64,000 nt of DNA from Orbicella franksi (Eukaryota). Positions 22,442-42,281 of the stretch are shown piece after piece (position 1 is the first letter of the stretch; each line of letters begins with the position of its first letter). The stretch spans positions 24,428,001 through 24,492,000 of the forward strand of contig OZ116699.1 in assembly GCA_964199315.1 (NCBI GenBank), given 5' to 3'. A program made the position numbers and the translations under genes. The notes under the pieces were generated by a model. That model did no database searches. It saw nothing but the letters and a program-made list of their open reading frames with translations, and had not been told where the DNA came from.

Positions 22442-23038
22442 CTATCTCCTTTTCCTACCAAGATGAAGGCCATAATGTGGACAGCCACATTTTGTTTTCG
22501 ATTTTAGCGGCCTCATCTTAAATTTCGGTGGAGTGTATTTGACTTTGTACATTATCATTGGGCGCATAAGGCAACATCCACCGCAACCACAAGGGCAACA
22601 GCAGAGAGATGGCTTCATCTTTGAGGACTTGTCCTTTAATTTTGAGACACCTCCTGCTCGAGCGCTTTTGCTGAATTCCTTGAGACCATCCAAAGCCCTC
22701 TCTAAAAGTCTACAAACTCGTTTTATTTTAGCTGCGTTGAGATTTCTTGCGAAGCCACTCCCGTCAGAAGGATGGTTGCTTCTGGACGCGAACATTCTTC
22801 TTACTGTCTTGTTCTTTCGACGGTTCTTGTTATAGTGGAAAGGTGAAGAAGTTTCGTTTGAAAATTTTAAGTTGACACGTAGGCTATAGATCAGGTTTGT
22901 ATTCCGTGTGGGGCTAACGTCATCGGGCGACTTGGATGCCAAGCAGTTACAATGTAGATTCAAAACAACGCCAATACACCATAACACTGTCAGTCGAAAT
23001 GTCTCTTTGATGAAACATTTTCGCTTCTGCAACAGCAT
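22442..23038 (-). CDS. Gene B: basic, probably secreted protein with CCCPCGCGGCC and a degenerate family motif
   Basis: 198-aa ORF with a hydrophobic N-terminal stretch. Its C-terminal YTPPKFKMRPLKSKTKCGC matches the CTPPKFKFKPLKP.P.C.C motif of genes C, D, E and G. Confidence 0.7.
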   Translation of the reverse strand: MLLQKRKCFIKETFRLTVLWCIGVVLNLHCNCLASKSPDDVSPTRNTNLIYSLRVNLKFSNETSSPFHYNKNRRKNKTVRRMFASRSNHPSDGSGFARNLNAAKIKRVCRLLERALDGLKEFSKSARAGGVSKLKDKSSKMKPSLCCCPCGCGGCCLMRPMIMYKVKYTPPKFKMRPLKSKTKCGCPHYGLHLGRKRR

Positions 23039-24279
23039 CCTCCCTTTCTACAGAAACTTGTTCCTTGTTTCCACATTTGCATGCTGGACGAGTGGGACCT
23101 ATTTTCGAACGATTTTCGGTTTAAGTAAGGTCACAAACATTCCCTTTGTTCTATATTACAGGTTGATCTGTCGCTCAACACAATATAAACACCGAAAGAG
23201 TTAATCAGTACCTTAACATAATTTAAAAAGAAGAAAGTTAGTTTTTTACCAAAACGCAAACAGGGAATAGTTTTTCGTTTCTAGTGAAAAGGTAATTTTT
23301 GGATGGCCCATCGCTGTTATGGCCACATTGAAACTCTTCACTTCTTCAAATGAAAAAAGCACCAAATTACCTTGGTAATTTGATAAGCTGGAAAAGAAAA
23401 CAAGTTTAGTTGTTTTTTTTCTAAAATATTTTTACATGTAGTTATTTGGAAGGCCTTGACAATGACTTAAAGGAAAAGTATTTCAATTGGTTGAACTTGC
23501 CTCCAGTTTTGCATCGCATGTGCTAATTCGGTATATGGTAAAGTTTAATAAACAAAGACCTCAATTTCGTAAATACCAAAAAATCATTACTTTTCTCTGG
23601 ATTCGTAAGAGAAATTGGTTTTTATATTCTCAAAATTCGATTACATTTGCACTGTCTTTGAAATAAAAACCAGAAACATTTTCTTGTTAGTGGAAGAAGA
23701 TATATTTCAAAAATTTATTAAGAAAATGCTTGAAGCCCTTCACTTTGTTAGTTAGCCATCGTTTTGTAAATATGCTGTATGCACAGCGCAAAAAACGATA
23801 CCGCCCCCGCTGAAATGATCCTGACTCCAACTGATTCCCGATTTCAGGTCTTGGAAAATGAACGCCGCTACTGGATCTAAGGACGTTTTATAATTCTCTC
23901 AGTTAAGTAGATTTTATGGGATTTTGTATGCGGCTGTAGTCGTAACTGCATGAAATAGGCGTTTTATCAACCATAGCTGAGTTCAAAAGCAAAATAGTAA
24001 CAATGAATTTCGGGCCATATTTAAAATAGACCATAGCGAGACGATTATGCTTCAATTAATTCTCACACACACTACGCTGAAACCATCAGCCTGAGTCAAA
24101 ACTGTAGATAGGGGTAAAGTCGTCACGAGGTACGTCAGATGATCATGGCAGCGTTAAAAAAACCCCAATCTTTAGAACATAGTGAATGATATCAAACACC
24201 GCGGTTTACTGCTTTTTCCTACTCTCACGTACTTAAAAAGGAAATACAAAAAGACAAAAGAAAAAAAGTCTTTAGAACT

Positions 24280-39527: not shown

Positions 39528-42281
39528 CTAGTAGAATGGTAAAGGGCCAAAGCCATGTCCATATCCTCCATATCCTCCATATCCTCCATATCCACCGAAA
39601 GGTCCGTATCCAAATGGTCCGTATCCACCGAAAGGTCCATAACCACCGAAACCATACGGACCAAAACCGCCGTAACCGTATCCAAAGCCATCACCGAATC
39701 CACCGCACCCGCAACGCTTTTCCACATCACCTCTCTTTAATGGACCTGCAAAGTGTAATAGATTGAATTGTGATTATCTGTAGTAAGTATATGCACTTCT
39801 CATTTTCACTTGCATTCATTTAAGGACACTTCTAGTTCCACGATAAATGTATTAAGATAAGCAAATATTTGCACCAGAAACATTTGCCTCACAGCTGTTT
39901 TTTGCGGCGAGTATGTGAACTGTTTGATCTGGATTTTTGACAAGATTGTTTCATTAGAAAGGTTTTAAAGTATGTATGTATCAATGGTAAGAATGAGTCA
40001 TGTGATTATGTCAAGAGAAACCCTAAGACTTAAAGGTAATTAAATGTCAAGTAAAACTGAACAACAGCTCGTCACAAAAATCCGAGTGACTAAACTTACG
40101 TATTGACTGAGGCTAATGACTAAGGACCTTCCCCCCTCAATAAATGGTTTCATCTTTAATAAAGCATAATAAAATGAGGAAAGGTAAATTGAAATCCGAG
40201 TGACTAAAATCAGTTATCTTAAACAGAAGTTTTCTTCCAGAACTTCGAATTCAAAGGAAGGACTTTACAAACTAACAGCAAAGATGTCAACTAACCTGCG
40301 CTCTTCTTTCCGCCGCAGCATCCATGGCAGTGTGGACAGTGGCACATCGGTTTGGGCTTGATTGGTGTGAATTTAAACTTAGGCGGGTCACATTCGCAGC
40401 AGCAGGGCCACATGCAAGGCCACTGACATTTGCCTTTCGGTGGCTTTTTCTGACAGCATTCGCAGCACGGATTGTTAACACATGCACCGAACGTGACGGG
40501 GAAGTTCAGATGCGGACAGCAACCGCATCCGCAGCCTCCGCAGCAATGGGGGCATTCAAAGCCGCCACAGCAGTTACCACAGCCGCAGCCTTCACCTGGT
40601 TCACCCCAGCAACCACAACAGCTACGTTTATCTTGGACTGTTCATGCAAGTAGTATCATGCAGCATGCAAAAATATAACATGCAAATTTATAAAGTTAGT
40701 CCATGCAAAATTTGCTGTTTTAAATATAATTTTCTATCCAGCTGCGACGCTGAAATTTAGCACAAAACTTTCATTTTTGATATGAGGGCTCTTTCTTCGG
40801 ACGTGTTTGCTGGGCGTATCAATTACACAGGGGGAGAAAATAATGACGACTTGGATTATCAATACAATTAGCTAGTTCCGTATGCGACGAACTACATGTA
40901 GGCATACGTTTCGATCCAGACATAAACATTTTAGAAACTTCAGTTAATCTTTCAAATGAGGTTACCCCTTTTTTAAAGCCACGATAAACGTGCCTTCTTA
41001 AGAACTTTGCAGTGTTAAAAGATTTCAGCTCGTGAATTATTCTTTTGTTCAAAACTCTAACCATTCAATTTCACTTTCAAATAAGAAACAAGGATCTTTT
41101 GATATTTCATAGTGAAGAAGTTTTGATCAGGAAATACAATATTTAGCCTTAACGTAAATAAAACACGTTTAAAAAATAAGTTCATCTCTTCTATATTGAT
41201 TAGTGCAGGTGGTTATCGACCTGTAATCTTTGAACGCTTCATTAAACAACAAGAAATTCCTTTTAACCCTTAAACTCCTAAACATCTGGTTACCTTTCAG
41301 CGCTCTGGTAATTTTAAGTCTTTGCTAAAGAAAGTCAAGACTTGATTTGTTTTGCCTCCTAAAATTCGAAGACACAACCGAATTGCAAAGCGCCAAAGTC
41401 CGATAAAATATTAATGATTTGGTCTTTGCGATTACGATTTTCCCTGAAACATTGTATTTAGAAGTCGAATATCCCGTTTAAAATGCTACGACCTCTAGAT
41501 ATTTATTAATTTTACGCTAAGAGAAATTTTCCGAGGATATTCATTAAGCGGGTCATTTATTACATACCTCGTAAAGAGCTAAACTGGCAATTCTTGTTTG
41601 GCCAGTTTCTCAACTTACCCCCTTAAGACTCAACATATATTTAATACATGGCTGTAAACAATGTTAAGATAGAAACAAATCATTATTTAAGACGAAAATG
41701 AATCTACCTTGTGCACTCTTGGAAGGCTTTTTGCTATCATCAACGGATCGCTTCTCGGGTTTGTCCTTTTCTTTGTCTGAATCGTCTATCACCACTCCTT
41801 TGATTTTTCCATTGCCGCTTCCCTGAAGCACGAGATGATCGGAGTCAAGATCTACACTTTCTTCCCCAGATGACTCTTGATCATTCTGTTGGTCGTTGAG
41901 ATCAGGTTCCTCCTCTTTGTCTTCCTCCTCATCTTCTTCCTTGTCTTCCTTCTTCTCATCGTCATCCTTCTTTTCCTCATCCTCCTTCTTTTCTTCGTCT
42001 TCCTTTTTCTCTTCACCTTCCTTCTCGTCTTCGTCGTCGTTTTTCACATCATCTTCTTTTTTCTCTTCATCAGATTTTTCTTCCTCCTTATCCGCCTCTT
42101 CTTCCTCATCATCTTTGGCCTTTTCATCGTCACTGGCCTCTTCACTTTTCTCCTTGGCCTCCATTACGTCCATAACATTTTCATTTTCTATCTTGTAAGA
42201 GGAGGCCACAGGAACGGCTGATGTTTGATAGACGACAACAAATAATGTGAAAACTACCAATAACAAGGTAGTTTTCATCAT
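39528..42281 (-). CDS. Gene G: 377-aa secreted precursor with acidic D/E/K block, Cys module and GGYG/GPF block
   Basis: Exons 42281-41708 (574 nt), 40637-40296 (342 nt) and 39745-39528 (218 nt) join in frame (1134 nt). Signal peptide MMKTTLLLVVFTLFVVVYQTSA; KR sites lie at the block borders. Confidence 0.82.

Follow-up and report, generated by a model that had tools for sequence, protein, structure and literature searches.

A gene in which a single leader exon is joined to one of several alternative terminal cassettes, each encoding a copy of the same cysteine-rich module, was found in a 64,000-nucleotide stretch of the Orbicella franksi genome (assembly GCA_964199315.1, contig OZ116699.1, forward-strand positions 24,428,001–24,492,000; hereafter the window, with positions counted from its first base). 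The region between 42.3 and 33.3 kb on the minus strand of the window is almost certainly one gene of this design, with a leader exon (exon 1) followed by the cassettes G, E and D. Each cassette consists of two exons (exons 2 and 3) with its own stop codon. The three are mutually exclusive, because transcript contigs join exon 1 directly to exon 2 of G, of E or of D. A preliminary description of the sequence had counted four paralogs; the junction contigs replace these with one gene, in which three alternative 3' cassettes are expressed and a fourth, C, has decayed. The coordinates of all features are given in Table 1.

Exon 1 encodes MMKTTLLLVVFTLFVVVYQTSA and then ~169 acidic residues. This propeptide is rich in Glu, Asp and Lys, with a net charge of about −44 and an internal PEKR site, and the exon ends with ...PSKSAQ plus one base (phase 1) at the donor AAG/GTAGAT (a slash marks the exon boundary here and in Table 1). 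Proteins P0036–P0046 include the N-termini orthologous to it. The Joint Genome Institute (JGI) metagenome/metatranscriptome collection was scanned with the last 23 nt of exon 1, and seven contigs from the same species, 99–100% identical to the window, carry the last 122 nt of this exon. Two of these (L013 and L015) join 41708 to 40637 (G exon 2) and then 40296 to 39745, one (L017) joins 41708 to 36926 (E exon 2), and one (L011) joins 41708 to 35334 (D exon 2). The remaining three (L012, L014 and L016) are unspliced and run into the intron. All of the exon 1–cassette junctions are in frame, at phase-1 GT-AG sites that were predicted beforehand. In each of G, E, D and C, the exon that carries the module opens with a strong phase-1 acceptor. 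The junction between G exon 2 and G exon 3 is found likewise in another species (P0014, L001 transcript).

The three spliced frames are complete to a stop codon. They read leader-VQDKR-(G domain)-GPLKR-GDVEKR-(Gly/Tyr tail) for G, leader-ARR-(E domain)-RKRGGDCSKR-(Pro/Tyr tail) for E, and leader-EKR-(D domain)-RRTAKRGPVKR-(Pro/Tyr/Phe tail) for D. Each boundary between domains is marked by a basic pair, either KR or RR, whatever the isoform or species; the last pair before the domain is KR in G, D and C, and RR in E. The products of exon 2 are 22–31% Cys, with CC and CCC runs and a net charge of +4 to +9. The tails are 22–28% Tyr+Phe, with the G tail having 44% Gly and 28% Tyr+Phe.

If G, E and D were independent genes, the junction and read-through contigs would have to be chimeras that arose from shared repeat-like sequences. 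The contigs do come from short-read metatranscriptome assemblies and all begin at the same base, 41829, and in Porites lobata (P. lobata) the annotation gives E and D a gene model of their own. However, the three junctions fall exactly on canonical sites predicted in advance, with the frame kept, and exon 1 and the cassettes have no common sequence that could seed a chimera. The same design is also present in RefSeq models from Acropora and Montipora and in an anemone annotation. Finally, neither E nor D has a convincing leader of its own, and chimerism as the source of the junctions is extremely improbable. A hydrophobicity scan of the window for ATG-initiated leaders found no credible signal-peptide exon for the cassettes except 42281–41708, and none for E in particular. 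A separate leader for D was considered at ATG 35704 and rejected – it is in frame with D exon 2 only through a weak donor, its signal peptide has 14 residues, and transcript L011 joins D to exon 1 instead, a junction that overrides it.

The ends of the cassettes are unusual. In each there is a splice donor at the stop codon or within ~20 nt past it (39526–39530, 36128–36136 and 34399–34418, minus strand), and in the transcript contigs the region of the next cassette appears as a 3' untranslated region (UTR). In G exon 3 the donor TAG/GTGAGT follows the stop immediately; contigs L013 and L015 splice from 39526 to 38896, with the alignment continuing to 37245. E exon 3 extends to 36128 and is then spliced to 35873–35227, reading into D exon 2, and D exon 3 extends to 34399 and is then spliced to 34003–33286. 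In two other species, contigs (L006 and L009) continue past G exon 3 through an E cassette in spliced form. Splicing of this kind past the stop codon would ordinarily be predicted to expose the transcript to nonsense-mediated decay.

One transcription unit in which tandemly duplicated, mutually exclusive coding units are joined to a constant part is also the arrangement of the clustered protocadherins and UGT1A, which have variable first exons, and of calcitonin/CGRP, which has alternative 3' exons. Unlike in those systems, what stays constant here is the 5' leader with its signal peptide and propeptide, and each alternative is a complete terminal cassette of two exons that ends in a stop of its own. 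Two further differences are that the transcript contigs carry the unused downstream cassettes past the stop, and that the arrangement is kept from coral to anemone.

Table 1. Features of the cassette gene and its surroundings in the window
Feature	Position	Strand	Description
Exon 1 (shared), coding part	42281–41708	-	ATG, 22-amino-acid signal peptide, ~169-amino-acid acidic propeptide
Five TGCATG motifs ((U)GCAUG, Rbfox-type)	40643–40707	-	6–70 nt upstream of G acceptor
G exon 2	40637–40296	-	phase-1 acceptor acag/TC, VQDKR, 27% Cys, donor GCAG/GTTAGT
Cys-rich module, cassette G	40354–40509	-	52 amino acids
G exon 3	39745–39528	-	G-PLKR-GDVEKR, Gly/Tyr/Phe-rich tail ending PLPFY + stop
G-isoform downstream untranslated exon	38896–37245	-	seen at least to 37245; runs towards cassette E
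E exon 2	36926–36555	-	phase-1 acceptor caatag/CT, ARR, Cys/His-rich domain, 31% Cys, donor GGAG/GTAAAG
Cys-rich module, cassette E	36655–36810	-	52 amino acids
E exon 3	36267–36134	-	G-DCSKR, Pro/Tyr/Phe-rich tail ending YYYF + stop
D exon 2	35334–34840	-	phase-1 acceptor ttacag/AA, EKR, Gly/Cys-rich domain, donor ACAG/GTGTGA
Cys-rich module, cassette D	34913–35068	-	52 amino acids
D exon 3	34558–34416	-	A-KR-GPVKR, Pro/Tyr/Phe-rich tail ending PRQF + stop
Assembly gap (N run)	33010–33146	.	non-coding, between D-isoform downstream exon 34003–33286 and right long terminal repeat 32368–32533
Long terminal repeat (LTR) retrotransposon	28413–32533	+	between D and C, antisense to gene, ~560 bp upstream of C acceptor
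C exon 2, decayed	27854–27424	-	phase-1 acceptor cctgcag/GT, GKRHWGCGG start; end inferred by homology, GC donor
Cys-rich module, cassette C	27494–27649	-	52 amino acids
C exon 3 (tail)	27069–26897	-	...PVKR-HLMNSFNG... ending PLRV + stop; frame open
B open reading frame	22445–23038	-	198 amino acids, own ATG; candidate gene

The peptide strings quoted in the preliminary description were recovered as exact matches in a six-frame search of the window, all of them on the minus strand. Each copy of the module is 52 amino acids long, rather than the ~57 first given, and the conserved core extends beyond it to ~85 residues in all, bounded upstream by C-x-N-C-x-G-G-F-x-x-P and downstream by K-P-x-C-H-C-P. 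Among the G, E and D cassettes of the window, identity is 62–73% in the module, 24–57% in the flanks and 20–26% in the tails. This excess of identity in the module is far above chance.

The module has a scaffold of conserved Pro, Trp and Phe residues, with Cys at positions 16, 18, 19, 28, 32, 36, 37, 38 and 40 and variably at 5, 10 and 15. Eight of the Cys are invariant, while positions 5, 10 and 15 (rarely 28) are Cys in some copies only. There are thus 10, 11 or 12 Cys per module, which can be an odd or an even number. With an odd count, one Cys or more has to find its partner beyond the module or in another molecule, and the variable parity means that not all of the module Cys are in fixed internal pairs. 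An exchange of Cys5 for Cys15 was considered as proof of a disulfide pair and rejected – anemone cassettes hold both residues, and D-type modules are without Cys10.

That the module defines a new family with no detectable relation to known domains, as had been proposed, is supported by searches of Pfam and PDB and by profile searches. In Pfam-A, the five open reading frames (ORFs) of the window matched no family at E ≤ 10, and full-length orthologues gave, at E ≤ 1, only sub-threshold matches to unrelated membrane-protein models. No Pfam match reached the gathering threshold, with ShK, EGF, granulin, keratin-associated, LCE and any galaxin models included in the search. Sequence and profile searches of PDB gave best E values of 0.19 and 0.49, both to unrelated proteins. 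A profile of twelve modules was scored against 1.84 billion cluster representatives, and 19 proteins were found, all at E ≤ 1e-20 and with no weaker tail. The hits with a named source are all scleractinian or actiniarian, and the family is, as far as this search shows, limited to stony corals and sea anemones (Hexacorallia). Its products are labelled 'uncharacterized' in the databases, and the literature searched, including spirocyte and cnidocyte marker papers and Nematostella matrisome supplements, makes no mention of the gene, the domain or the architecture.

The nearest protein-language-model neighbours in the ESM Atlas are keratin-associated, LCE and SPRR proteins, at scores of 0.57–0.73, which have the strength of a lead only. 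These mammalian proteins are alike in composition, being Cys-rich with CC runs beside a Gly/Tyr-rich segment as in the G isoform. They differ in being cytosolic proteins of vertebrate keratinocytes without a signal peptide or convertase sites. The likeness is compositional and convergent, with no homology detected.

Selection was compared by counting codon differences between the window and its P. lobata orthologues, in which synonymous sites are saturated (synonymous divergence, dS, ~1–2 or not computable). In the three modules (156 codons) there are 6 nonsynonymous and 63 synonymous differences, for a nonsynonymous divergence (dN) of 0.016. The exon-2 flanks (234 codons) have 48.5 nonsynonymous and 95.5 synonymous differences (dN 0.092), the leader exon (166 codons) 54.5 and 67.5 (dN 0.147), and the tails (150 codons) 61.6 and 59.4 (dN 0.20). 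Flanks, tails and leader thus change ~6–12 times faster than the module, and the counts for module and flanks differ significantly (Fisher p 8e-5). The preliminary description had named a lack of excess module conservation in orthologues as a result that would refute the domain; the excess was found, with dN 0.016 in the module against 0.092–0.20 elsewhere. Its statement that the flanks diverge freely is not borne out – the module has the lowest dN, but the orthologous flanks are themselves constrained, with omega ~0.06. The modules of window D and P. lobata D1 differ by 24 synonymous changes, yet all of their residues (52 of 52) are identical. Comparison with anemones gives 44 of 52 identical residues for window G against one anemone cassette and 42 of 52 for window D against Nematostella; module identity between corals and anemones is 75–85% overall.

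The same layout is found in other species. In the P. lobata locus (L010) a single leader exon, the only one found there, is followed by cassettes in the order G, E, D1, D2 and C; every cassette acceptor in it is in phase 1. Its annotation joins the leader to G (P0044), with E and D fused as a separate model (L010 15032–19739). In RefSeq, Montipora foliosa 'isoform X2' (P0045) and Acropora muricata 'isoform X3' (P0046) each have an orthologous leader joined to a D-type cassette, and the homologue in Nematostella vectensis is 'LOC116617360 isoform X5' (P0060). An anemone locus (L022, assembly GCA_009602425.1, which we take to be Actinia tenebrosa) has five tandem cassettes and four annotated products, which begin at a common upstream point, each one ending after the next cassette in turn; all four acceptors that were read are in phase 1. 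The presence of this layout in both corals and an anemone indicates that the design is older than the split between stony corals and sea anemones.

The domain tree clusters the cassettes by type across species. Window G groups with P. lobata G, window D groups with Montipora D, and the E clade has support of 100/99. Concerted evolution, gene conversion and recent duplication were considered as sources of the similarity among modules and are ruled out by this clustering by type and by the saturated synonymous sites. Two other gene models in the family are incomplete or merged: the Oculina model XP_078359404 (P0005) begins at a Met inside the domain, and a Desmophyllum model (P0061) fuses two cassettes.

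Cassette C has an intact orthologue (L008), relative to which C exon 2 has insertions of +3 nt (in frame), +25 nt and +1 nt. The +25 and +1 nt insertions put the C module out of frame from the C phase-1 acceptor. The module also has an Arg at an otherwise invariant Cys (WPRCC). Independent assemblies from ENA, MetaClust and JGI contain the frameshifted C ORF (P0006/P0035) too, which makes an error in the window assembly unlikely. The C tail is 76% identical to the L008 tail (tblastn). The LTR retrotransposon between D and C has LTRs (28413–28578 and 32368–32533) that are 98% identical, and its ORFs for a gag zinc knuckle, reverse transcriptase and RNase H are broken. Its insertion may have separated C from the rest of the transcription unit.

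The N run at 33010–33146 adjoins no module or coding exon, and since it is flanked by non-coding DNA only, continuity across the gap has no bearing on the observations of the modules. The gap may hide a further cassette; in P. lobata the corresponding position is occupied by a second cassette of the D type. A second N run, at 52793–52920, is outside the gene.

Past C, the B ORF was said to keep only the end of the module, and it does: all that it has of the domain is the final ~25 residues (TPPKFKMRPLKSKTKCGCPH), which align to the domain profile over 25 columns at an hhalign E of 6.9e-6. An identical copy of this ORF is present in four Logan contigs, colinear with the genome.

A candidate for the switch between cassettes lies directly upstream of G. 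The minus strand of the window has 24 copies of TGCATG, and the window as a whole is not enriched in them; five fall within 65 nt directly before the G acceptor. No other acceptor in the window, of a cassette or a tail exon, has a TGCATG within 100 nt upstream. There are also five at the G-type acceptor of P. lobata and five in the L001 species, another coral. In the anemone locus there are three at each of two G-type cassettes, the second of which also has a fourth GCATG, and none was found at the non-G cassettes of P. lobata, the L001 species or the anemone. The G acceptor is thus accompanied by what is expected of an Rbfox-regulated site, a conserved intronic (U)GCAUG beside the acceptor. 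Upstream intronic Rbfox sites usually repress the exon that follows, and the G acceptor is the first cassette acceptor to be transcribed. Rbfox proteins bind GCAUG (PMC11874969). An Rbfox-type factor at the cluster may block the G acceptor and so let exon 1 reach the distal E or D. Another stretch of ~300 nt, upstream of the E acceptor (36966–37285, minus strand), is 74% identical to positions 1557–1880 of L006, from another coral species; the counterpart there has no open frame, and this may be a conserved intronic regulatory sequence.

The explanation that best fits the whole combines this architecture with proteolytic processing, a structural role in the cnidocyst and the splicing switch, and as a complete account it has about an even chance of being correct. 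The precursor would be cut in the secretory pathway by a convertase at the conserved dibasic sites, which would free the Cys-rich domain from the acidic propeptide before it and the tail behind it. The Cys-rich domain would then act as a disulfide-cross-linking structural unit, in keeping with the polymerisation suggested at the outset, which is a reasonable conjecture, and the alternative tails – Gly/Tyr-rich in G, Pro/Tyr/Phe-rich in E and D – would set the properties of the material. A disulfide-cross-linked material is consistent with the odd Cys counts, the density of CC and CCC, the Gly/Tyr or Pro/Tyr tails and the neighbouring genes. For the product itself, a structural role might equally well prove right or wrong, and the wall or tubule of the cnidocyst, possibly the spirocyst, is the likeliest location but is proposed only tentatively. 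The spirocyst is specific to hexacorals, and the taxonomic range of the gene is compatible with a cnidocyst component of this kind. The acidic propeptide ends in a basic pair, which recalls the Anderluh-type propart of cnidocyst-targeted proteins except for its far greater length. Acidic proparts that end in KR are typical of cnidarian secreted proteins, nematocyst proteins and toxins, but not specific to nematocysts (PMC3447340).

Among the known systems nearest to this one are the Cys-rich domains of minicollagens and NOWA, which are alike in their restriction to cnidarians, in secretion behind a propeptide that ends in KR, and in being small and dense in Cys. These domains are thought to form intermolecular disulfide polymers in nematocyst walls. 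The earlier view that the module is not a minicollagen domain holds, as the CxxxCxxxCxxxCxxxCC spacing is absent from it. The module is 52–85 amino acids long with conserved Trp, Pro and Phe, compared to ~20 for the minicollagen/NOWA domain. There is no collagen Gly-X-Y run or polyproline stretch in the full spliced products or in the full-length orthologues.

Several observations weigh against the combined explanation. The module is unlike the minicollagen/NOWA domain and has no sequence relation to it, and AlphaFold2 gave no confident fold for it from alignments of 23 and 34 sequences (mean predicted local distance difference test scores, pLDDT, of 46 and 45). Searches of the literature and its supplements found no expression, localisation or proteomic link to any cell type or structure. 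Proparts that end in KR are also found in gland-cell toxins outside nematocysts, and the propeptide here, at ~170 residues, is ~10 times longer than the 9–17 residues described (PMC3447340). Binding of a cnidarian Rbfox protein at the TGCATG cluster is putative. The transcript contigs have no poly(A) ends, and the downstream cassettes in the apparent 3' UTRs may be partly processed RNA.

The product could instead be the precursor of a secreted bioactive peptide (an antimicrobial, a toxin or a signalling peptide), in which the anionic propiece would keep a cationic, Cys-rich peptide neutralised up to its cleavage by a convertase, on the model of defensin- or damicornin-type precursors. A signal peptide, a propeptide of charge −44 and cationic (+4 to +9) Cys-rich products bounded by KR would all be expected of such a precursor, one leader with several mature peptides would diversify the repertoire, and KR proparts are typical of cnidarian toxins, gland-cell ones included (PMC3447340). 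However, the mature regions of toxins and antimicrobial peptides usually diversify fast (PMC3447340), while the module is the slowest-evolving part of this gene (dN 0.016), with the 52/52 identity at saturated dS and the 75–85% identity between coral and anemone. In addition, 22–31% Cys with CC and CCC runs, variable parity and low-complexity tails are atypical of knotted peptides, and no toxin or antimicrobial-peptide family was matched in Pfam. A bioactive peptide is accordingly regarded as unlikely.

Metal binding is another alternative to disulfide polymers – the Cys residues, or Cys and His in E, could make these secreted metal-binding or metal-hardened components. Cassette E has CCHGCCHGCCHCCHCC after the module, the neighbouring genes are rich in CCHD, CCEP and CCH, and the Cys parity is variable. 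However, Cys in the secretory pathway is normally oxidised, the conserved Pro/Trp/Phe scaffold suggests a defined fold and not a metallothionein-like cluster, and the His-rich flanks are specific to cassettes and outside the conserved module. This alternative is quite improbable.

A role in the skeletal organic matrix has to be weighed as well, given that many of the named hits are stony corals. A galaxin-like or acid-rich biomineralisation protein would bind calcium carbonate through its acidic region and have a di-cysteine framework. Galaxin and galaxin-like proteins share with this product a signal peptide, a dibasic site, di-cysteines and, in galaxin-like, an acidic N-terminal region, so that a signal peptide with an acidic and a CC-rich region recalls the galaxin-like architecture. 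Galaxin has tandem repeats of ~30 amino acids, while here there is one non-repeated domain, with orthologues in anemones that have no skeleton. The acidic region is upstream of the conserved KR sites and is probably removed, it is Glu/Lys-rich and not Asp-rich, and no Pfam model was matched. Since hexacorals both with and without a skeleton carry the gene – Nematostella (P0060) and the anemone locus L022, with the same cassette layout, among the latter – a primary skeletal role is argued against; it was rejected as the primary function on the anemone orthologues and, being close to refuted, is very improbable.

If the disulfide-cross-linked structural reading is taken further, this may be a hexacoral-wide gene with one leader in which an Rbfox-type switch and a disulfide-polymerising domain would give capsule or thread materials specific to cell types through the different tails, for example in spirocytes versus nematocytes or in different secretory cells. 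This extension is speculative and fairly unlikely.

Other genes in the window also appear to encode secreted proteins. Directly downstream of B there is an open frame of 963 codons at 18857–21745 on the minus strand (954 amino acids from its ATG) with a signal-like start and 36% Gly; from its composition it looks like a secreted, structural protein. Upstream of the leader, at 44832–46114, 54245–56674 and 61710–62126 on the minus strand, are secreted Cys/His-rich genes or exons with CCHD, CCEP and CCH runs. For two of these there is a dedicated signal-peptide exon (at 46114 and at 56674), and the third ends in KR and an aromatic tail, like a cassette. The first two are syntenic with genes upstream of the P. 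lobata leader (L010 518–1303 and 6875–7540). On the plus strand, at 9707–17441, exon-like frames with Hsp70-type motifs mark a multi-exon gene of the Hsp70 family upstream of the cluster.

The family described here was previously undescribed and is nearly unchanged across a very deep split. Automated annotation has scattered this one gene into fragments, fusions or models without a leader. The gene is an accessible system in which to study how an early-branching animal regulates the selection of one complete terminal cassette over the others, and it comes with a conserved element as a candidate for cis control. As Nematostella has an orthologue, LOC116617360, direct tests of the cell type, the processing and the loss-of-function phenotype are possible. 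Should the product be a building block of the cnidocyst or of an extracellular material, it would represent a new class of cnidarian structural protein beside the minicollagens.

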